Shown here: piece by piece, positions 5,541 to 62,658 of the stretch | Layout: the number at the start of each line of letters is the position of its first letter | How positions within the stretch are numbered: the stretch's first letter is position 1 | Assembly (NCBI GenBank): GCA_964234715.1 | Contig: OZ174291.1 | Reading direction: 5' to 3' (one strand) | Source: Podarcis melisellensis | Lineage: Eukaryota | Length of the DNA: 64,000 nucleotides | Notes under the pieces: model-generated | Seen by the model: the letters and a program-made list of their open reading frames with translations, nothing else | What the model was told of the DNA's origin: nothing | The model's database searches: none | Translations under genes and position numbers: made by a program

Positions 5541-7533
5541 CAGTGGTGCCTCGCAAGACGAAATTAATTCGTTCCGCAAGTCTCTTCGTCTTGCGAGTTT
5601 TTCGTCTTGCGATGCACGGTTTTCCATAGGAATGCATTGAAAATCAATTAATGCGTTCCTATGGAAAAAGCCTTCCCCTGACCTCTTCTGGCGGGCGGCA
5701 TTTTAAAATCGCCCGGGACAGCGGAGGACTTCTCCGCTGTCCGGGGCGATTTAAAAGCCCCTGGGAAGGCAGGCAGGGGGGACAAAGGCTTTCCCGCCCG
5801 GCCGCCCGGCTTCGGGACATCGTTCCGATGCCGGGCGGCTGGGGGAGGCTTTCCTGCCCCACCGCCCGGCATCGGGACGATGCCCCGATGCCGGGCGGCT
5901 GGGGGAGGCGTTCCTGCCCCACCGCCCGGCATCGGGACGATGCCCCGATGCCGGGCGGCTGGGGGAGGCTTTCCTGCCCCACCGCCCGGCATCGGGACGA
6001 TGCCCCGAAGCCGGGCGGGGGGGGGAGGCTTTCCCGCCCGGCCGCCCGGCTTCGGGACATCGTTCCGATGCCGGGCGGCTGGGGGAGGCTTTCCTGCCCC
6101 ACCGCCCGGCATCGGGACGATGCCCCGAAGCCGGGCGGCTGGGGGAGGCGTTCCTGCCCCACCGCCCGGCATCGGGACGATGCCCCGATGCCGGGCGGCT
6201 GGGGGAGGCCTTCCTGCCCCACCGCCCGGCATTGGGACGATGCCCCGAAGCCGGGCGGGGGGGGAGGCTTTCCCGCCCGGCCGCCCGGCTTCGGGACATC
6301 GTTCCGATGCCGGGCGGCTGGGGGAGGCTTTCCTGCCCCACCGCCCGGCATCGGGACGATGCCCCGAAGCCGGGCGGCTGGGGGAGGCGTTCCTGCCCCA
6401 CCGCCCGGCATCGGGACGATGCCCCGATGCCGGGCGGCTGGGGGAGGCGTTCCTGCCCCACCGCCCGGCATCGGGACGATGCCCCGATGCCGGGCGGCTG
6501 GGGGAGGCTTTCCTGCCCCACCGCCCGGCATCGGGACGATGCCCCGAAGCCGGGCGGGGGGGAGGCTTTCCCGCCCGGCCGCCCGGCTTCGGGACATCGT
6601 TCCGATGCCGGGCGGCTGGGGGAGGCTTTCCTGCCCCACCGCCCGGCATCGGGACGATGCCCCGAAGCCGGGCGGCTGGGGGAGGCGTTCCTGCCCCACC
6701 GCCCGGCATCGGGACGATGCCCCGAAGCCGGGCGGGGGGGGGGAGGCTTTCCCGCCCGGCCGCCCGGCTTCGGGACATCGTTCCGATGCCGGGCGGCTGG
6801 GGGAGGCTTTCCTGCCCCACCGCCCGGCATCGGGACGATGCCCCGAAGCCGGGCGGCTGGGGGAGGCGTTCCTGCCCCACCGCCCGGCATCGGGATGATG
6901 CCCCGAAGCCGGGCGGGGGGGGGGAGGCTTTCCCGCCCGGCCGCCCGGCTTCGGGACATCGTTCCGATGCCGGGCGGCTGGGGGAGGCTTTCCTGCCCCA
7001 CCGCCCGGCATCGGGACGATGCCCCGAAGCCGGGCGGCTGGGGGAGGCGTTCCTGCCCCACCGCCCGGCATCGGGATGATGCCCCGAAGCCGGGCGGGGG
7101 GGGAGGCTTCAAAAGCCGTCCGGGGGCTTTTAAATCGCCCCGGACAGTCCCGGGGCGATTTAAAAGCCCCCGGTTAGGCAGGCAGGGGGGGCAAAAGTCT
7201 TTGCCCCCCCTGCCTGCCTTCAAAAGCCGTCCGGGATAGCGGGAAGCGCTTCCCTGCTATCCCGGACCGCTTTTAAAATGCTGGCGGTGGGGAGCAAAGC
7301 CTTTCGCCCCCGCCGGCCTTCCTGGACCTCTTCTGAAGTCCGGAGGGGGGGGAAGGCTTTGCTCCCCACCGCCAGCATTTAAAAAAAGGTCCCCGAGATT
7401 TCCCTATGGGCTTTCGTCTTGCGATGCAAGCCCATAGGGAAAATCGTCTAGCGAAGCGTCGCAAAAACCGAAAAACCCTTTCGTCTTGCGGGTTTTTCGT
7501 CTTGCGAGGCATTCGTCTAGCGGGGCACCACTG
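5541..7533. mobile_element. Non-autonomous Tc1/mariner-pogo (Tigger-like) DNA transposon with an internal tandem array
   Basis: Terminal inverted repeats CAGTGGTGCCTCGCAAGACGAA / TTCGTCTAGCGGGGCACCACTG, TA on both flanks. A shorter sister copy lies at 30146. Confidence 0.9.
5788..7105. repeat. GC-rich ~60-bp minisatellite, 22 units in a higher-order pattern
   Basis: Unit A ggctttcctgccccaccgcccggcatcgggacgatgccccgatgccgggcggctggggga and unit B with cttcgggacatcgttccga. Order B-AAA-B-AAA-B-AAAA-B-AA-B-AA-B-AA. Confidence 0.95.
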
Positions 7534-9916: not shown

Positions 9917-10360
9917 GTGAGAGACCTGCATTGGCTCCCAGTACGTTTTCAAGCACAATTCAAAGTGTTGGTGCTGACCTTTAAAGCCCTAAATGGCCTC
10001 GGCCCAGTATACCTGAAGGAGTGTCTCCACCCCCATGGTTCAGCCCAGACGCTGAGGTCCAGCTCTGAAGGCCTTCTGGCGGTTCCCTCCCTGCGAGAAG
10101 CGAGGTTACAGGGAACCAGGCAGAGGGCCTTCTCGGTAGTGGCGCCTGCCCTGTGGAACACCCTCTCATCAGATGACAAGGCAATAAGCAACTATCTGAC
10201 TTTTAGAAGACATATGAAGGTAGCCTTGTTTAGGAAAGCTTTAAATGCTTAATGCTGTATTGTGTTTTTAATATTCAGTTGGGAGCTGCCCAGAGTGGCT
10301 GGGGAGGCCTGGCCAGATGGGCGGGGTATAAGTAATAATTGATGATGATGATGATGATGA
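9917..10360 (+). mobile_element. L2/CR1-clade LINE 3' fragment (end of ORF2 plus 3' UTR)
   Basis: LHWLPVRFQAQFKVLVLTFKALNGLGP...RAFSVVAPALWN motif typical of L2 ORF2 C-termini; microsatellite tail. Confidence 0.85.
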
Positions 10361-10510
10361 CTGCAGTAGTCTCCCCTCACCAAAGCCCCACCTGCCCGCC
10401 TCCTTACTTAAAAGCGGGTGCTGCTGCTAGTCAGCCTCAGCGTTGCCCCTTAGGCAAGTACCCGCCTCCCTTGCTGTAATGGACCAGCCTCCACTGGCAG
10501 CTGACTTTAC

Positions 10511-10684
10511 CTGGCATGGATTTCCCAGAGCTTGGTGCCCATCCTCTGATCCCACACACAGACCAGGCCCTCTTCCCCTCCGCTGACGATCTTCCAGTCA
10601 TCCATCTGCACAGAAGAGACTCCCAGCTGGTGGCCGTAGAGGGAGCAAACGGAGGCGCTTATGCGGAGGTCGAAAACCCTCACC
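10511..10684 (-). CDS. FBXW8: FBXW8 exon 9, WD40 repeats (VRVFDLRISASVCSLYGHQLGVSSVQMDDWKIVSGGEEGLVCVWDQRMGTKLWEIHAR)
   Basis: Highly conserved VQMDDWKIVSGGEEGLV motif. tcttag / gtaaag boundaries. Confidence 0.96.
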
Positions 10685-11498
10685 CTAAGACAAAGACAGA
10701 AATGCAGTCAAGTCTCGTGTCACTGGCACAACCCCAAAAGAGATGGATCCAGCAAGATCTACTTGGAACCACGTTAGATTCCATACGTGCCGACAGCCAG
10801 CCTCTCTCACTAGTTGAGCCGTCTATGAGAGGCAGTGTGGTGCAGCGGTTAGAGTGCCAGAATTAAGACCTGGGAGAGCAAGGTTCAAATCCCCAAGTCG
10901 GCCACAAAGCCTGACCCACCTCGCAGGGTTATTATTGTGGGGATTAACTGAGGAAGGAGAGAGCCATGTACACAACCCTGAGCTCCTTGGAGGAAAAAGG
11001 TGGGATAGAAATGCCCTAAATGAAATGGATGCTTATACGTAAGAACACGGGACGAGCCCTGCCAGATCAGGCCAGTGGCCCATCTAGTAGCCAACCACAT
11101 GCCCATGGGAAGCCCACAAAGCAGGGCACAAGTGCAACAGTGCTCTCGGCTCCTGATTCGCAGCAACTGGCATTCAGCAACATGTTGCCTCTGAAAGTGG
11201 AAGTAGAACCCAGAATCACCATTGATAGTGTTAGCTGCTATGGGAGGGATTCCCAAAGTGCAGTCCACAGACCCCTTCATCCAGGTGGTCCGCAGCACAC
11301 CTGCAATTAAAAATCATGTAGCACCTAGGACAGCGCATGACAATTGCTACAAGAGGCAGAAGAATCCGTCAACAACCTCAGCAATTTTTAAGTGGGGGGA
11401 AATGGTTTGGGGACGGCTGCTCCAATTATTATTATTGTTATAAGTTCCCCACCCATCTGACTGCGTTTCCCCAGTCATTCTGGGTGGCTTCTAACATA

Positions 11499-12606: not shown

Positions 12607-14382
12607 ATAATGTGTTGCAGTAATCTAACCTAGAGGTCCCCGGAACAGAAATGGAAGAAGTTATTGAGAGCTACTAGCACTCATGAACCCCTCTCTCTGT
12701 GCTTCCTCTAGGGAAGTGAGGGGCATTATGAATATACACCGCAGCCTAGCAAAAACATCCAAGGAAGGTGTGACGTGGAGTCAGTCAGGGGTGCGGCCTG
12801 GGGAGGCAGAGAGGCTGGGAGAGCTGCTTCTCAGCCTGAGGTTTCCCACTGCTGGGTTCAAAGAGGCTGTGGGAGAGTTGAGCAAGTGCATGATGGATGC
12901 AGGAGGTAGGGCTTAGCAGTCTGATCATCCAAAACCGCTGAAGATGAAATCATTGCAGATTGCCAAAAAGGGGTGTGTGTGTGAGTGTGTGTCTCTGTGT
13001 GTAACAATGACAGAGCCCAGAGAGTAGAGCGGGAACCGCCACAGAGGCTGCTGGAAAAGGAATGGAAGCTAATCCTTGGGAAATGATGAACTGCGGAAGC
13101 TGGAAGGCCCGAACGGATGACAGGAGGACACTCCCTGTGCCAGCACTTCCATTGTTCAGGATCCCTGCTCCGATCTGGAGGCTGTTCCAAAAAAACAAAT
13201 CCAAAGCTTCCCCTCCTTCCCTCCCTCCTCCCCGCATTGCCCTTCTCTAATGAAACCGCCCGGCAGGAGCCTGGGAATAGCTCCGTTCCGACAATTAGAA
13301 CAAAAAGGAGGACAAAGGCTTCCGACCGGGTGGCATCCATCTGACAGGCTGGAGAAGGGAAATGAGCGTGCTCAGGCAGGCTGGGCCACGCGCAACACCT
13401 CCGCTGCCGCTTGTCAGAGCATCCACAGATGGAGTAAACAAAGCCTGTCTCCCGCTCTTCCTCTTGCCTGGGTGGGGGGCTGCGCAGAGCTCGGCACTGG
13501 GCGAAACCGAAGCGCTGCTTCCAAGCCCCCGTCCATGACAGCGTGCGGCCTGGCGAGCTGCCCGCCGGCGTCGCGTATGATAATCAGGCCGCCTTCCATC
13601 TACCGAGCCCTGGCTGAGTCGTCGCGGTTTCATTTGCAAGGACCCGGCTTCCAGGCATCCGTTCCCGGGGGCGGGGCGGGGGGGGGAGGCAAAAGACACT
13701 TTTCGAGTTGTTGTTGCTTTTGTGCGGCGGGGAAGTCTTACCAACTCCATCTCCCAGGCTTTGGCTACCAATGCCAGAGCACTGTGGTTCCGCAAAGATT
13801 GAACCTTGAAAAGGATGGAATTAGGGAGCTGGGTTTAGGATTTAGGGACCTGGGAATCTCAGGCGCTGTCTTCTCTCCCCCCGCCCCCCCGCTATGAAGC
13901 TCACTGGGTGCTCTTTAGGCAGTTACTACCTGTCACTTAACCTACCTCACAGGGTTGCTGCTGCTGTTTTTTAAATTAGTTTTTATTAACGATTGTGTGT
14001 TAGAAAACATAGAACCACGCTATATCGCCAACCAAGTGCACCACATAATCCCACACATCCTGGAAGGTGAAACGAAACAATGGGTGCACTTGGAGGTAGA
14101 TAAAACCAGAAAAACCCCCACTATGGCATACCCGTTCCTCGAAAACAAACTAAGGAAAATTCCTGCAACACTAAACAGATTCACACGGCCCATACTTAAA
14201 GGAAAACTGGCCCAAACCCCATCCTCAGTGATTCCCCTGGCTCACAAGGTGGTTGTGAGGGCAAAAGGGGGAAGAAAGAAACATGCACGCTGCTCTGAAT
14301 TGTGTGCATGAAATAAATATAAATTTAAATGAAATGAAGCAAGTATCTAGTCCTCAGGCCCATGGGGAGAGGCTTGGAAGTA

Positions 14383-14608: not shown

Positions 14609-15075
14609 TAAGGACAACGTCCGTAACTCCCAGAAGCTGGAGAGAGGCTAAGTGCTTAAATATGTTTCCATTTTTAATTGTGTTGCTTTATCCCTGATGT
14701 GTTTCCTGACCTGAGTTTCTTTGGGAAGAAGGGTGGGAAATAAATTTAAACCCTCCTCCTCCAGTGCACAGGAGATGGTGCTTTACAGCTACACAAAACC
14801 ACTTGACCCTGAGTTTGGAGGAAAGGAGAGCAAAAGGTGACACGAAGGAAGTGTAAAAGAAATTATGTACAGCATGGAGAAAGAAGGTAGAGGAAGGTTT
14901 CTGTCCTTACCACCACCACCCCGACTCTCCTAACACAAGAACCTGTGTTCTTCTTCATGTGCCTCCTCCACGAGAGGTCTGGAAAGTGGCAACACGAGAA
15001 CCTTTTGTACGGTGGCTGCCCATTTGTGAAATGCTCTCGCCAGGGAGGTTCACCTGGCGCCTTCATTATACGCTT

Positions 15076-15205
15076 NNNNNNNNNNNNNNNNNNNNNNNNN
15101 NNNNNNNNNNNNNNNNNNNNNNNNNNNNNNNNNNNNNNNNNNNNNNNNNNNNNNNNNNNNNNNNNNNNNNNNNNNNNNNNNNNNNNNNNNNNNNNNNNNN
15201 NNNNN
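15076..15205. other. Assembly gap (130 N)
   Basis: Run of N; a MITE is truncated at its right edge. Confidence 1.
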
Positions 15206-16668
15206 GTCGAACGCCTTGTGACATTTTGGCTCCTGAACGCCGCAAACCTGGAAGTGAGTGTTCCGGTTTGCTGACATTCTTTGGAACCCAAATGACAGAC
15301 GCGAGTTCCGATTGGCTGCAGGAGCTTCCTTGGTTTCCGAATGTTTTGGAAGTTGAATGGTCTTCCAGAACGGATTCCCTTTGACTTCCGAGGTACGCCT
15401 GTACTCAGGATCGATTTGAAAAAGTACCCAGCTTCACCCAGCACAAAGTTGAATGATGGAACTGGCTCCTGCAGAAGGCAGTTAGGCTCTGAAAATCCAG
15501 AAAGGGGAAACAACATGCCTTTGAATCTGATCCTGGACCAAAGTGCCACCTGGGGCCTGATGCATGGGGGGGGGGGGAAGCAAGGTACAGGGAGGGAGAC
15601 AGGTGTGTGAGAAGGGGAGAAGGAAAGAGCAGGGAGCTATTACCCAGCTGGCCTTTGGCCACCGTGCGACATCCCTTTGGTGCGGTGTGCTGGACCATTT
15701 AAATAATTAACACCCTGTCTCTCCCCCCGCCAAAAAAAAGAAAGAAAAAGAAAAGGTGGCGGGGAGGAGGGGGAATCTAAAAATTGGATGTGGAGGGACG
15801 TGGTTGTTGTTTTTTTTAAAGCACTCTAATCTTTACACGCTGATGACTCTGAGCGCTTCTATGTCTGCCAACAGACACTGAGCGGTGGGGGGGGGAGGGG
15901 GGAGAGACGTAAGACTGGCCAAGATGAGGAGATAAAGGGGTGGGGAGCCGCAAATCAGCTAAATAGGATCTGGAATTCATTCACGTGAAAATCCTTTTTT
16001 GTTTTGGCCACCTGAGAGACATCAACTGCAACCCAACCTACATGATTGCCACTGTTTGGTGGCGGTGATGCCGAGGGGGTGGGGGTGGGTTCTCTTTTTG
16101 GCACGTGCGATTCTCCCTTAGGTTATTTCCCTACTTCAAAATTTCAGGAAGTGAGGTTTAAAATGCCAAACTCATTTCTTTCTCCTTTTTTTCCACGAGT
16201 GTCCGCAGGAAAGAGGAGGGCCTCATTCCAAGAGGCCTCGCTGGGCAGTAGTACACCAACTGTGTCCACCAAATGGCTTTAAAAAATATATTATGTTGGG
16301 GGGGTGGGGAGAAGAGGAATAAAGGAGGGACTCTTCCCGCAGAGCTTGCAAAACAACGACAGGACAGAACAAAGCAAAGCGAAGTGTGCTGTCCAGCCAT
16401 GACCTAATATTGCGTCTGATTTTCTGAAAAGTTTATGCAGACTCTTGCCTCTGGTGTGCAGTGCAATTCCGTGAAAGGCGACAGGTAAGCTGCTACAAAG
16501 GTACAGCCACGTTTGGGCTGGGGTGCCAAGATCCAGGCCGGCCCAAGACATTTGGGAAGGTGTTGTACCTCGGTGGCAGAGCATCAATCCCCAACGGCAT
16601 CTTCAGGCAGGGCTGGGAAATACTCCTGCCTGAAATCCCCCCAAGAGCTGCTGCCAGTCAGTGTAGAC

Positions 16669-50984: not shown

Positions 50985-51149
50985 CTTCCAGTTGGTTCTT
51001 AAAACCTGCTCCTTCTCCCGGCATTCCCGGAGGGTCCTTTTCCAGAAAGGAGAATCAGATATTTGACTGTTGGGCAGGTAACCTTCTTTTTGGCACAACC
51101 GGAACCAAAGGAGCTGGTCTTCTGCAAGGACCTTCCAGGGCTTGCTAAC
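50985..51149 (-). CDS. FBXW8: FBXW8 exon 3, end of F-box (VSKPWKVLAEDQLLWFRLCQKEGYLPNSQISDSPFWKRTLRECREKEQVLRTNWK)
   Basis: Matches human VSKTWKVIAEDEVLWYRLCQQEG...LRTNWK. ttttag / gtaaac boundaries. Confidence 0.95.
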
Positions 51150-53609: not shown

Positions 53610-55542
53610 CTGTAGAGATATGAAAAACACAAATGCTCTGCTGAATCAGAGCGGCAAGGGGGGGGGCATTTAATCTAGAGACAGCTGGCGTGTCGTGCTC
53701 CAGGTCTTTCTGTACTACAGTTCCCATCAGCCTCAGCCGAAATGGCCAGGGGTCAGAGGTCATGGGAGCTGCACTCCAGAAATATCTGGATGGTGACTAC
53801 CCGGGGTTTAAGGAACATGATGCACACCTGGGAGGGGGTATAGAGAATAACTTCTCACTGGCTGCTCCTGTGCTTTGGAGTGCCTTTTCTGAGACCAGGC
53901 CTCATTTAACCCTCTCTGGAAACCTTCCAAAGAACAAGTAAATGTCTTTTTTTAAAAAAAAAACAACAGATATGATTCAGACAGGCCTTTTGCCTGACAG
54001 GCTGATTTGCCTTATGGTTTTTCCACCATGTGTGTGTTTTTTTCTGTTTTAAATCGCCCACAGTTTTACTGCCATGTTTCTGCCCACTCTGGTTTTCAGG
54101 ATGATAGAGAATTGCATTCAGACCATGGGTCCATCTAGCTCAGCACTGTCAACACAGGCAGGCAGGGGCTCTCCAGGGTTTCAGACGAGGCTCCCTCCCA
54201 GCCCCACCTTGGATATACTGGGGACTGAACCTGGGGTCTTCTACATTCAAAGCAGATGTTCTGTCACTGAGCTACGGCCCTTCTCCATCAGCAGCAGAGA
54301 TTCATGTGGGCTTGTTCCTGTTGCTCTGAGCCCCAGATACATGCAGCAAGAAATCTCACCACAGAGAAGACTCGCTATCATGCTGCTACCCTCTGGACCT
54401 CTTTTAGAGGGAGCACATGAATAACAGCCTCAAATGATGATTGCAGGGTTCGGGTCGATTCGTATGGGGTCCTTGAGGTATTGACATTCTGAGCCGTTTA
54501 AGGCTCCGTTCATGACACTAATCATAAAACTAAGTAAAGGGGGGGGAAGCACTCCCCAAATCATGATGCAATCTCTCATGGAGAAGGCCAGATGTTGCAG
54601 GCCAGGGGGTCCCAAACCGTGGTCCATGAACTTCAATTTGGTGGGCTGTGCCACGTCTGCATTAAATACACTGGTTTTTAATTGGATTTTAAAAATTGCG
54701 GCTTATATTCAAATATATTTCTTACATTGCATTTTACTGTTTGACAATCTGAATTCTGCAGACGGCAAATTCTAACGCAATAAAATACAATAGAAAAAAT
54801 AAAAACAGCAAGAAAGGTATGATTAAAAATTGCACGGCAACTAGCACAGCGCCTTACAATTGCTTCAACATGCAGAAAAATCACAGTGGGGCAAGCCAAG
54901 GCAACCAGCAATTTTCAGGTCTCCCACTGGGAGCAGGGATTTTGGGGAACCACTGTTTTAAGCCAAGCTCAGAATCCTTTGGAAACTCAGAGGACATCTT
55001 AAGGCAGTGGTTGTAGAACCTGAAACTCCCCTTTTCAACCCTGACCTTTGGCCATGCTGGATTGAGCTGGTGGGTGTTGGAATGCCACAGAAGAAGAGAA
55101 GAGTTTGGATTTGAGATCCCGCTTTCTCACTACCCTACGGAGTCTCAAAGCAGCTAACGTTCTCCTTTCCCCTCCTCCCCCACAACAAACACTCTGTGAG
55201 GTGAGTGGGACTGAGAGACTTCAGAGAAGTGTGACTGGCCCAAGGTCACCCAGCAGCTGCATGTGGAGGAGCAGAGATGCGAACCCGGTTCCCCAGATTA
55301 CGAGACTACTGCTCTTAACCACTACACCACACTGGCTCCATTAGCGACCCCAGTCCTGGGGTGCTACTAGCTTTCAAGTGTGAGGGATGTATGCTTGTTG
55401 AGGCCACACTTGCCTTCTAGCTTGGGAAGGCCCAACTTTTCTGCACTTGCACTGTGCTGCTTTACACTGTTTTGCTAGCCAGCTGACCTATGTCATTTCA
55501 CTGCATTCTATCACTTACTTTGCTTTGCTTGTTTAATTGTAC

Positions 55543-55548
55543 TTTATT
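55543..55548 (-). terminator. Candidate polyA signal for the nested ORF
   Basis: tttatt on +, about 550 nt after the ORF stop. Confidence 0.35.
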
Positions 55549-56095
55549 GTATACTTTGTTTTAAGGGTTCACCACTTTTGGGGGCCTTGTGGGGACCAAG
55601 AAGCGGCCAATGAATAAATCCTCATCATCCAAGGTGGATAAATGGAAGTCGTGCCCGTTCCGTGTGCTTTTATGAGGTCACAGGATACATGGCAAGTGAC
55701 GGGAGGGGCGCAGAACACTGGGAAGAAGACAGGAAGGAATGGTGGGCCACATGAGCTTCACTCCTCCAATTCAATCTCAATGGGGTGACGACTCAAGGAA
55801 TTCCCAGTCCCAAGTCCTATCAGGCAAGGTTCCAAAAGGCAGTATCACGGAGAGTTAGTTCCTTCCTCAACGGAGTTTCAACATGTGCATCGTGGTTCTC
55901 CCAGAAGCACCCTCTGATTAGCGGTGGTGATCATCTCCTTCTTTCCAGGACGGCCTGCCACTCATCTGGGCGATACAAATGGCCATTCGGTCTCCACTAC
56001 CCTCAATGCAACTGCAGCTGACGCAGCACCCAGGACGACTGGGAATATCATGGACGCAACCCCCTGCCGGCGACGCTTTGTGGTGTATCGCTGAG

Positions 56096-56758
56096 TTAGA
56101 AGGGTTGATAGAAGCCATGTGGATCGTGTAGCATAGCCAGCTGCTGCTGATTGCTGAGGGCCGCCTCCACCCGCTGCTGCTCCCGCTCCACCCACCTCTC
56201 CGTGTCTTGGCGCGCGACATCGAGGCTGTGGCGCAGCCGGCGCTGCTCATGCTCCATCCGCCGATCCGCGCGGAGGTTGGCATTATCCTGATGGTCCTGC
56301 AACGAGTGCCGATGCAGCTCTTGCGCGGTGAACAGGCGAGAGTCCTTGGCCTCCAAGTGGTCCCAGTGCTGCGCCACCAGCTGCAATTGCCGCTGGCGTA
56401 TCGCTTCCTCCTGAGCGGGGTCGCTCCTCCGGGAGCTCAGCCTCCGGCGGAATTCCTGCTGCCGCGCCAGCTCCTGCTGCCGCTGCTCCTCTTCCTGCGC
56501 CAGGCTTTGCCGCTGCTGCAACGCCCGCTGCTGCTGCTGCGACACCCGCCGCTGCTGCTCCAGCAGTCGCTGCTGCTCCCGCTCAAACTCCAGCCGCTGC
56601 CACTCCCGCTCCGCTCGCTCCACTTGCCGCCACTCCCGCAGCCGCTCCTCTTCCTGTTCCCGCAGTTCCACAGCTTCCTCCTCCTCTGCCGATTCTCCTG
56701 TGATGTAACTGCGCAACTGGGTGATGTAATTGCCAACAAGGGTGATGAAATTGCCCAT
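56096..56758 (-). CDS. Putative nested intronless gene: 220-aa E/R/Q-rich coiled-coil protein with an MGNFIT N-terminus (uncharacterised)
   Basis: ATG in acgATGG context, in-frame TAG 17 codons upstream, CpG-rich codon-like composition, non-repetitive C-terminal half, and AATAAA on the same strand at 55548-55543. No homolog recognised. Confidence 0.6.
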   Translation of the reverse strand: MGNFITLVGNYITQLRSYITGESAEEEEAVELREQEEERLREWRQVERAEREWQRLEFEREQQRLLEQQRRVSQQQQRALQQRQSLAQEEEQRQQELARQQEFRRRLSSRRSDPAQEEAIRQRQLQLVAQHWDHLEAKDSRLFTAQELHRHSLQDHQDNANLRADRRMEHEQRRLRHSLDVARQDTERWVEREQQRVEAALSNQQQLAMLHDPHGFYQPF

Positions 56759-57369
56759 CGTTACATGCAAGAAGCACACAGTCTTCTCTTTGCAGAGTCG
56801 ATTGTCCTAGTAGGTTTCCCTGCGCCCATCCATGGAGACTGATATCCAGCTGTAGCCTTCCCCTGGCAGGTTGAGCTTCAAGGCCCACAGAGAGGGTAAG
56901 GATAACTAACATGACTCAACAATAGGCCCATTGATCACTGGGACTTTGCCCACCATGTGCCTGGGCTGGATGGCTTCAGGCTTCAGCGGCTCACAGGGAC
57001 CTGTTGGTCCAGCTAGTTCAGCATGGCCAACAATGACTGGCAGCAGTTCTGAAGGGCTGCAGAAAGGGGACATTCCTAGTCCTTACTAGAGGTGATGAGG
57101 ATTCAACCTGGGATCTTTAGCATCCAAAATAGGTGCTCAAACCAATGGGTTATGGCCCTTTCTTGAATGACTGAATAGTCTTCAGAAAAAAAGGAAAGGG
57201 GAGAGTTATCTCTTCAGGGAAAACTTAAGAAATAGGAAAATTTATACCATTAATTCCTTTTCTCTGTGTGCCATAAGAAACCCCAAGACATCACAGCGGC
57301 CCTATGGCACCCCATAGCATAAATACCGAGAGACCAAAAAAAAAACCCAAACCACACTCTCCCAATGCT

Positions 57370-57630
57370 GCTCTCTGGACTAGGTCATGTAAGGAACAGG
57401 GCCCCCAAATCCCATCCCACGTAGTTGGTCCAGAAGGATACGGAAGTCAACAATATTAAATAGCCACAGAAAGCTTGAGAAGGACCAAGATCAGCCCTGC
57501 TTGTCCCATTAATAGAGGCCATTCCCGGCAGGGTGACCAAGACCAACTCGGTCCCATGGCCTGGACTAAAGTCAGATTTAAATGGCTCTAGATATTCCAT
57601 ATAATCCAAAAATGCCTACAGCTGTCCCAA
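57370..57630 (-). mobile_element. Decayed L2-clade reverse transcriptase fragment
   Basis: LEPFKSDFSPGHGTELVLV resembles the LDPFQSGFRPGHGTETALV RT motif. Confidence 0.65.
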
Positions 57631-60600
57631 CTTTCTCCCCCACGTCTGCTCTTTACAGTCAATGTCTGCTCACTGGCTCTCAGTCAAACCTACCTCACAG
57701 GGTTGTTTTGGGGACTGAATGAGGAGGTGGAAAGCCATGTCCTCCACCTTGAGTTCCTTGGAGAAAAATATGGGATATAAATGCAATGATTCTTTATTTT
57801 TATTATTATGAAGAGGAGGAGGAGGAAGGAGGAGAGGAAGAAAAACTAATAATAAGAATAATAATAATCCTGACATTGGCATACAAGCAAAGACAGCTGC
57901 CAGGAGGAGTTAATGCTCTAGCAAAGGGAAAGAAAACTACCATAGTTGATTGCTTCTTTATCAAATGTTGAGATTTTGCAGTTCCGTGCATGTTATAATT
58001 CTGGGAGTAGATGGAAATATCTCTATGCCCTCCAGGGAGAGAGAGCCTTCTCTACTAGGGATCTGGGCTCCTCTCAGGTGAGAGATGGGAGGAGTAAGAG
58101 ATCGTCCAGAGTCCAGTACTGCTTCAGATATCAGGAATGCATCTTATGAGTGTACACTTGTCTGTGAACCTTTGCCTGTGGGTTGTAATATTCTTGAATA
58201 TGAGTGGTTCACGTATGAGCGGCAGACAGAGGCGACGTTTGAGGTAGCGAATGGCTGCAGTGGTTGTGTGAAATGGATGGTGAGCGAGACTGGATGAACG
58301 ATTTTATGTTGTGTTGTTTGGAACTATATAATTATACTGCCTTGTACTTTTCTCCAATTTTATTTGTTTTGTGTTATGGATTGGATATGGTATGAGTATT
58401 TTGCTATGCAAATCACTTGACTTTAAAAAAATAAAAATACGCATAGTATGCATAAACCACTCTGAGGTCTTTCAGGCAGTAAAGCAGTCTATAAATGGAA
58501 GTAGCAATAAATCTTATTAAACTCTGCTCTCCATTTTAGCTAAAGCAAGCGTCTGATGACATTGGTGAGGCTTCTGAACAAGAGAGAGAAGTAAACACAA
58601 TGAAGCTTTGCCAGCCTCAAAGTGAGGATGGGGTGGGGAAGGAAGGAAGGAAGGAAGACAGGTAAGGAAGAGAGGGGTGGAAAAACAAAAGCCAAGGCTT
58701 GCCAACGTAGAAAGCATTTGTAGCACCACTGCCAAATCTAAGTTAAAACATTGCTTTAGAAAGCACAGACGCTCCTAAGTGGATTCTCGGGTTCCAAGAG
58801 GTCCTTTTAACACTCATGGAGGGGAAAAAGCATAACAAAAATATTATCCCACTGTGATTTTAATCAGATTACTTGTAGCCCCACTAGGCTTATAAACCTG
58901 GGTTTTTCCAAGGAGGGGCCCTGTGACCAGGCACCCCCATTAATGCACCAGGAACTGGCACTGCCAAGCCTAGTAAAAGCTTCGCTGAGCGAGGCACAGC
59001 TGCAAGAAACCGCTAATAAAAAGCGTCTCGAGCCTCCTGCTTTACAAGCGCTGCTCCCATTTAAAGCACAGGCAAACACACACAGCATTTGGCTCCAGCT
59101 CAAACTTCCTAGCTCAGCTTGAGTTAAGGGTACAGGTGAGCAACTGGATGCCAAAAGATGTTTAAAAAGGAAAAGAAAAAAAGTCTTCCCCCCTACCTAA
59201 CAGAGATAGGAAGAGAGAAATAAATTTCGCCGTTGATTTTACCGATACGGAGGCCTGTCTGCCGAAAGCTAAGCTGAGCCACTCAAAAGCATCTTATTAA
59301 TATAAAAATAAATAAGTCTGTGAGCAGTGTTAGAAACTGATATGTGAAAGCTAGGAGCTAAATGGCAGCTGAAACCTAGGTTATGGGCGCAACAACGGAA
59401 TGTCTAGTTGCACTTTTTTATAACAGGAAAACAAAGCTGAAAATGGATGAACTGCAGCTAAAATCTTATGTTCATTTTTCATATGGTCTAGTCCTTCCCC
59501 TGCCCACCTCCCTAATATTCTTAAGAGGGTCTCTTCTTCAGAGAGGAGCTGAAAGTGAGGGGCAGAAAAAGGTTCTCCTTTCCTTCCACTCTGCAGTTTT
59601 AATCTGAAATCTTAGGTGCAGTACTGTGCCTAGAGCTCAGAAACTGCTCGAGCAAATGAAATTCCCTGTCGCAAAATGTGCCTACAACAGTGGGAGTTTC
59701 AAACGCTGTCAGTGAGTTATTTCCCAGGTTTCCACCGAATCTTACCAGCAGAATATCCAAGAGCTAAATACAAATATGCAAGAAATTTGTGTTCTATAAT
59801 CTCACATATATAGCTATTTTAGTGATTAACTGAATCCTAAAAGGGAACCAGAGCAAGCTTGAGTGGAGTGCCATTTAATGCTTTTATACTTTCATGAGAA
59901 AGAGCTACACCTCAGTGACAGAGCATCTCCTTCACATGCAGGAGGTCCCAGGTTCAATCCTCAGCATCTGGGAGAGTCGCTGCCAGTCAGTGCAGACAAT
60001 ACTAAGCTAGATGGAACAATAACCTAGCTTAGTATAAACCATTTAGACAGTCTAACCCAGTAGACAAATTCTCTGTGACCAAGTTGTATACAATAGTTTC
60101 CTTCTGATCACTGAAAATGATTCATTGGGTCAAAACATGTCTGGTCCTTGACATATTTCATTATCATCTGCTGGTCATATTAGGACTTTGACCTGAGTAG
60201 ACAAATCAATTTGTTGCCATAGTTTAGTCATTTTGCCAACATTCTAATCTTTTAGCGTTAAAGTTAAATTAATTAAATTTAAATCTCCTTTTCCTATTTT
60301 ATTTAGAAGGATCCAGGTCTTTTATTCTTACCCAACTTAAAACATTTTTTTCGAGTTCGCGTTGCTCATGACGCTGGTCCACACTAGCCAATGCAACTTC
60401 ACTGACTCTCAAACTGCTCTGCCGCCCATAAGAATCACAATAATGGTAATAATAATAATAACGAACGCTAACAGAACAACAGCTGTGAAAAGCAGCATGG
60501 CATTCCATTTAACAGAAGAGGTCTTCCATCATTCAGCCAAAAAAATAAAATCAAAAGCACCGGGAGGAAAATGAAAACGGTCTTTATTTTTTATGGCTTT

Positions 60601-62553: not shown

Positions 62554-62658
62554 TTGAGCACATCTCCCCAGTTCCGTCCTGCTGAGGAACTGAAATATTT
62601 TTAACGCCAGTTCATAAGGCAGCTGAACGTCAAAGAAGGGAACTTCGTTTATTTCATT
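62554..62658 (-). CDS. FBXW8: FBXW8 exon 2, start of F-box (NEINEVPFFDVQLPYELALKIFQFLSRTELGRCAQ)
   Basis: Matches human NEMNDVPFFDIQLPYELAINIFQYLDRKELGRCAQ. tttcag / gtaagt boundaries. 105 bp. Confidence 0.96.

Follow-up and report, generated by a model that had tools for sequence, protein, structure and literature searches.

Does the long open reading frame (ORF) that lies inside an intron of FBXW8 in a squamate-type genome represent an undescribed gene? A preliminary description, based on the letters alone, had proposed a lineage-restricted protein with a myristoylation-type N-terminus and a long charged coiled coil, produced either by a separate nested transcript or by an alternative terminal exon of FBXW8. 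Here, the frame, its host intron, its possible transcript, its conservation among related organisms and its predicted product were analyzed. The term "window" is used throughout for the whole 64-kb stretch of DNA that was analyzed.

The open reading frame and its sequence environment

The uninterrupted ORF of 220 codons plus TAA was found again on the strand of FBXW8, the minus strand, where it runs from the ATG at 56758 to the TAA at 56098-56096 (56096..56758). The start codon stands in the context acgATGg as reported, and an in-frame TAG is located 17 codons before it, at 56807-56809. The AATAAA expected about 550 nt past the stop codon was located at 55548-55543 and is followed on the minus strand by an ATTAAA at 55537-55532. 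Between the ATG and the upstream end of the assembled contigs described below lies a 5' leader of 134 nt (56759..56892, minus strand). It carries two upstream ATGs, both in good context: the one at 56833 opens a frame of 8 codons, while the one at 56829 opens a frame of 22 codons that stops 2 nt short of the main ATG.

The description of the surroundings as CpG-retaining also held. The GC content over the ORF was 0.63-0.68 with a CpG observed/expected ratio of about 0.8; the ratio was 0.14-0.3 in the flanks, and the GC content of the window was 48%. The GC-rich island (55751..56750, no strand assigned) matches the body of the ORF and not the region upstream of the transcript, and 32 of its 53 CpGs form the start of Arg CGN codons. 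The product is of extreme composition, with Q, R and E making up 48% of the residues and with 35 Arg and a single Lys among the 220. CGN is used by 32 of the 35 Arg codons, and the commonest Arg and Gln codons are CGG (22) and CAG (31). As a CpG transition converts CGG into CAG, some of the Gln richness may reflect decayed Arg codons. The strong periodicity of GC content over the three codon positions (0.77/0.36/0.80) was to be expected anyway, because a Glu/Arg/Gln-rich repeat gives the same pattern.

When this T-poor, GC-rich stretch was shuffled with its dinucleotides preserved, a stop-free run of at least the length of the ORF arose in 2.5-3.7% of cases (p about 0.03). By itself, the length is therefore marginal and barely beyond chance. 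Further long-open frames exist at the same DNA, including one of 211 codons on the opposite strand (56207-56842, plus strand) with a Leu/Pro-rich translation. This antisense frame was considered as a gene and rejected: a CGA to TGA change at 56690 introduces a stop codon in two related organisms, A and F, and it is therefore regarded as a compositional by-product.

Other stretches of unusual composition were recorded in the window. In the FBXW8 region, a minisatellite with a GC content of about 0.77 and a CpG observed/expected ratio of about 0.85 occupies 5786-7109, consisting of 22 copies of a 60-nt unit with a higher-order period of 479 nt; all six of its frames are open, with ORFs of up to 490 aa. 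At 13251-14000, a second CpG-island-like stretch (GC 0.56-0.62, CpG observed/expected 0.76-0.82) carries overlapping ORFs of 215 aa on the plus and 166 aa on the minus strand and might represent a further promoter or transcription unit within an intron. At about 15000-15300, 130 consecutive N mark a gap in the assembly or a masked sequence.

Location within FBXW8

Candidate exons of the host gene were compared singly with human FBXW8 (PDB 7z8b chain F). Three minus-strand exons matched. The exon at 62554..62658 encodes F-box residues 108-143 and ends with the donor CAA|GTAAGT; the next one, at 50985..51149, follows the acceptor TTTTAG|GTT and encodes residues 144-198; the third, encoding residues 227-283, was found at about 37.4 kb. 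On the basis of these matches, the ORF is placed inside an FBXW8 intron, where it lies in sense orientation about mid-way in an 11.4-kb phase-0 intron between F-box-coding exons. The location within FBXW8 that had been proposed was thus correct, while the numbering as intron 2 holds if one exon beyond the window encodes residues 1-107. Another candidate exon, for the WD40 part of FBXW8, was seen on the minus strand at 10510-10707; it contains VQMDDWKIVSGGEEG and resembles 7z8b chain F near residue 485 in a secondary alignment. In the literature, no paper linking FBXW8 to a nested gene was found.

A probable discrete transcript in RNA-like sequencing runs

Contigs from two sequencing runs that appear RNA-like, their RNA nature being a guess, were aligned to the locus. 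In the 76-Mb run X1 of organism A, two contigs were found, one of 746 nt at 55519-56264 (depth 27.7) and one of 294 nt at 56599-56892 (depth 26.9). In run X5 of organism B, one contig covers 55527-56206 at a depth of 9.1. The adjoining unique intron sequence showed a depth of 0-7 in RNA-like runs, and part of the stretch was present in 12 small RNA-like runs from 3 related organisms and 4 studies. We are aware of the fact that these are assembled contigs, from which the RNA strand, the true ends and the level have to be inferred.

Highly repeated DNA served as a yardstick for the depth. The SINE that flanks the locus, present at a depth of 20118 in X1, reached 4.3 million in a genome run at 37x, so single-copy DNA should appear in X1 at a depth of about 0.17. 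The depth of the locus exceeds this value about 160-fold, and plain DNA is therefore an unlikely source of the contigs. The low ends of the contigs of organisms A and B (55519 and 55527) lie 5-29 nt beyond the AATAAA/ATTAAA pair of the minus strand, and no plus-strand poly(A) signal was found near 56892. Provided that the runs are RNA as guessed, a depth of 9-28 between near-empty flanks, with the contigs of both organisms ending shortly beyond a poly(A) signal, marks a discrete RNA. Transcription above the intronic background, and the option of a separate nested transcript, were thus supported by the relatives.

The middle of the ORF (56265-56598), which is of low complexity, falls between the RNA-like contigs and lacks coverage. 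An intron at this position was considered and rejected. We read the gap as a break in the assembly, since a donor GT is missing, its 334 nt are not divisible by 3, and the contigs showed no joint there. The 5' contig at 56599-56892 likewise aligns over its whole length, with neither a loose end nor a joint to FBXW8 exon 2. The findings are most simply read as an RNA of about 1.37 kb, unspliced, polyadenylated and transcribed from the minus strand (55519..56892, about 1374 nt, its ends being contig ends and not mapped RNA ends), comprising the leader of 134 nt, the ORF of 663 nt and a 3' UTR of about 577 nt (55519..56095) that carries both poly(A) signals. We consider it very probable that the locus is a discrete expressed nested unit.

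Copy number and flanking repeats

Genome contigs from two related organisms, E and F, which are 1.7-2.0% diverged from the window, cross 55314-57706 unbroken at a word depth of 37-39. The depth across 55404-57625 was that of single-copy sequence in both genomes, which excludes a high-copy element and agrees with the earlier statement that no repeat was recognizable here. No second copy of the locus was found within the window.

The locus is flanked by two copies of a tRNA-headed SINE, one on the minus strand at 55097-55338 with its natural head at 55338, the other on the plus strand at 57670-57790. The word depth of these SINEs in the genome runs of the relatives was 10^5-10^6, implying on the order of 10^5 copies. 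From the joints, it was conceivable that a unit of 2.3 kb had been inserted into a SINE. This was rejected, since the SINE pieces are oppositely oriented, position 55338 is a natural head, and the other piece is a separate, 5'-truncated copy. Neither multiple copies nor homology to proteins of transposable elements or endogenous viruses were detected for the locus. Elsewhere in the window, a 111-aa ORF on the plus strand at 9917-10252, with the peptide LHWLPV...FKVLVLTFKAL, resembles a translated retroelement tail of a kind common in reptiles.

Conservation of the frame among relatives

Substitutions were evaluated for organism A, whose list of differences is nearly complete, whereas for organisms B, E and F the list gives a minor part of the differences. 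Comparing organism A with the window, 5 substitutions were listed in the covered parts of the ORF and 26 differences in the 3' UTR. Four of the five are synonymous (R192, Q184, D180, S23) and one is non-synonymous (Ser23 to Ala). With synonymous sites making up 0.22-0.28 of the total, at least 4 synonymous changes among these 5 listed substitutions would occur with a probability of 0.009-0.023; the corresponding dN/dS is about 0.07. If up to 3 further differences near the contig ends are counted, the probability rises to a worst case of 0.07-0.15. The proposed dN/dS comparison gave a low value, from a small count of mostly synonymous changes. None of the alternative frames did as well on the same substitutions. 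The divergence of organism A was 1.5-1.9% in the covered ORF parts versus 4.5-4.8% in the 3' UTR (Fisher p 0.02-0.05).

The whole ORF is crossed by the genome contigs of organisms E and F, for which every indel was recorded. Within the frame there were just a loss of 3 nt at 56389 and a gain of 18 nt at 56529, both present in organism F and the latter being one acquired repeat unit, while the indels outside measured 11, 10, 1, 1, 1, 1, 2 and 3 nt. The periods of the three tandem arrays in the ORF (21, 30 and 21/18 nt) are all divisible by 3. Frame-breaking indels, which would have spoken against a gene, were thus absent from both organisms; this preservation is only weakly informative, because all known carriers are close relatives, diverged by about 2-6.5%. 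Overall, the case for coding is thin but suggestive. That the ORF is protein-coding and under constraint has, in our judgement, an even chance, its translation being putative.

Homology searches

The protein was compared with a broad range of collections. Pfam gave 0 families at E values up to 1, including no match to trichohyalin/TPH (PF13868). A word-indexed protein search with the whole protein and with its last 60 aa gave 0 matches, phmmer against 1.84 billion cluster representatives found 0 relatives, and the ESM Atlas contained no match to the whole protein or to residues 113-220. Among PDB sequences no relative was accepted; the sole match, the helical arm of a seryl-tRNA synthetase (E 0.15), was taken as compositional. 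Foldseek with the AlphaFold2 model detected no fold match in the PDB, and no viral relative was found among viral contigs. Searching 55000-58000 against Rfam gave nothing. As the protein was absent even as itself from the collections searched, it appears to be unannotated. The results fit the suggestion that it is lineage-restricted.

Features of the predicted protein

AlphaFold2, run without an alignment, predicted three helices at residues 2-20, 24-109 and 114-210 with a mean pLDDT of 84. The pTM was 0.35, so no packing of the helices against each other is predicted with confidence.

The N-terminal segment (residues 2-21; 56696..56755, minus strand) follows an MGNFIT start and consists of three 7-residue repeats, encoded by a 21-nt tandem array of 2.7 copies at 56700-56755. 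It is the most amphipathic segment of the protein, with a hydrophobic moment of 0.45 whose maximum lies at 100 degrees; 0.6% of shuffles attain this moment. One face of the predicted helix would be formed by F, I, L, V and Y and the opposite one by polar G, T, T, T, S, N, N, G, Q, G and one Arg. The N-myristoylation pattern known from PROSITE, G-{EDRKHPFYW}-x(2)-[STAGCN]-{P}, is permissive. The sequence MGNFITL fits it, and the putative myristoylation-type N-terminus noted before was recovered in this form. Given translation, an association of the protein with membranes via this N-terminus appears evenly balanced, judged from the sequence features.

Residues 24-109 (56432..56689, minus strand) form an E/R/Q-rich stretch predicted as a single long helix with a pLDDT above 93. 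Tandem arrays with a period of 30 (56588-56647) and of 21/18 (56508-56577) underlie this region. The second long predicted helix, residues 114-210 (56129..56419, minus strand), is of higher sequence complexity and passes the SEG filter, in agreement with the "more complex helical half" of the preliminary description. The reading of the charged helical part as a coiled coil or a single alpha-helix (SAH) was not sustained beyond the prediction of long helices. There was no heptad periodicity, the best fixed-register a/d occupancy being 35-38%, and no power peak at 3.5 residues in residues 22-112 or 113-205. In residues 22-112, 8 opposite-charge pairs at i/i+4 were counted versus 9.7 +/- 2.5 expected, hence no excess of the kind that marks an ER/K SAH.

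Weighing of the possible explanations

Our best explanation is an expressed orphan locus that is probably protein-coding, and we give it an even chance. Its main competitor is a real but non-coding transcript, that is, an unspliced intronic RNA from an orphan CpG-rich island, its ORF having arisen incidentally from GC-rich, T-poor DNA of repeat origin. The marginal length of the ORF against shuffles, the several long-open frames on both strands, the extreme composition built from tandem repeats and the ATGs in the leader would all be natural for such an RNA, as would the absence of homologues from all searches and of coiled-coil or SAH periodicity. It accounts poorly for 4 of 5 listed substitutions being synonymous in this frame only, for an antisense frame that is broken in relatives, and for an ORF that, although rich in CpG, has diverged less than the 3' UTR. 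Indels and repeat periods of the ORF that are all multiples of 3 and a significantly amphipathic N-terminal helix also argue against it. We consider the non-coding transcript possible, but clearly on the doubtful side.

The other explanations are less probable still. If FBXW8 had an alternative terminal exon here, or a product of intronic polyadenylation, the host protein would be truncated within the F-box and the ORF left unused. Such a product would lie on the same strand within the FBXW8 intron, as the locus does, and would use a poly(A) signal that is present and taken as working; a pyrimidine-rich tract followed by an AG near 56869-56900 could provide the acceptor. However, the 5' contig reaches upstream of this AG and aligns fully without a joint to exon 2, and the depth of the upstream intron is 0-7 compared to 27. 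The in-frame TAG also precedes the ATG, and the frame of an exon that begins behind the AG near 56869 would not match that of the ORF. This second option of the preliminary description is thus left without support and regarded as quite unlikely. A chance ORF in silent intronic DNA, with the RNA-like contigs actually stemming from DNA, e.g., from capture libraries, is in keeping with the guessed nature of the runs and with the weak significance of the ORF length. It conflicts with the enrichment relative to the SINE-based estimate of DNA depth, with the empty unique sequence next to the locus and with contig ends that meet the poly(A) signal in two organisms, and we consider it very improbable. 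An origin from a transposable element, a virus or a retrocopy is brought to mind by the SINE copies on both sides and by the intronless, CpG-rich coding sequence. Single-copy depth in the genomes of two relatives, the lack of a second copy in the window, of any protein relative among the 1.84 billion representatives and of a viral locus speak against it. Nor was a parent gene, a poly(A) remnant or a target duplication seen, and this origin is the least credible of all.

For the favored orphan locus, the following course can be proposed. An independent, intronless, polyadenylated unit, probably transcribed from the minus strand from about 56892 to 55519, would be nested in sense in the phase-0 FBXW8 intron of a squamate-type genome and most likely encode a young, lineage-restricted protein of 220 aa. 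Its frame may have grown through tandem duplication of units of 18-30 nt, all multiples of 3, in GC-rich DNA, with in-frame gain and loss of units still ongoing between species. The protein would be all-helical, starting with a 20-residue amphipathic helix with an MGNxxT start, followed by an acidic patch and two Glu/Arg/Gln helices of about 90 residues each. With or without myristate, the N-terminal helix may insert into a membrane, from which the charged helices would project as an extended arm, giving a small peripheral-membrane rod or tether. A more far-reaching version places the birth of the gene in the recent past, from GC-rich tandem-repeat DNA of the FBXW8 intron in one squamate lineage, with purifying selection acting on it since then. 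The product would then be a membrane tether in miniature, its myristoyl/ALPS-like anchor made from three copies of a 7-residue unit and its charged helical arm still growing by in-frame repeats. We regard this version as unlikely.

The locus is a candidate new orphan gene and not a new kind of system. If translated, it would be a clean, datable lineage-restricted vertebrate gene in a known host intron, in which the build-up by in-frame tandem duplication is visible, expression is found in several related species and the membrane-binding design is testable. It would be useful for studying the birth of orphan genes and their gain of function in reptiles, and gene sets of squamates would gain an unannotated member. 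Should it be non-coding, the locus would be no more than an intronic transcript of the ordinary kind, with a warning on long ORFs in GC-rich repeats.

Comparison with known systems

With orphan, possibly de novo, intron-nested genes the ORF shares its short and intronless structure, the absence of homologues, a biased composition of low complexity, internal tandem duplications and an occurrence in close relatives only. A de novo origin is a hypothesis here. ARF-family GTPases possess N-myristoylated amphipathic N-termini. The MGN start followed by hydrophobic residues and the amphipathic helix are comparable to these, but the ORF encodes no GTPase domain and shows no homology to the family, and the lipidation of its product is only putative. 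Trichohyalin/TPH-type and ER/K SAH proteins resemble the predicted product in their very high content of Glu, Arg and Gln, in long unbroken predicted helices and in a single coding exon. The product differs from them in having no Pfam TPH or S100 match, almost no Lys and no i/i+4 excess.

The closest parallel in overall layout concerns membrane tethers. ALPS motifs are amphipathic helices whose polar face consists mainly of Gly, Ser and Thr with few charges (PMC4569407), and in the golgin GMAP-210 a long tether ends in an ALPS motif (PMC4961469). Residues 2-21 of the ORF product have the make-up of an ALPS motif, both in their hydrophobic moment and in their G/T/S/N face, although 20 residues are at the short end. 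Unlike GMAP-210, to which it shows no sequence similarity, the product has 220 aa versus about 2000, an arm without heptads, no C-terminal Golgi-binding domain, and a helix of only 20 residues that also carries a myristoylation-type start. Like GMAP-210, it would combine an N-terminal, low-charge amphipathic helix of the Gly/Ser/Thr type with a long helical arm behind it, a resemblance that points to a shared design rather than to membership of the same family.
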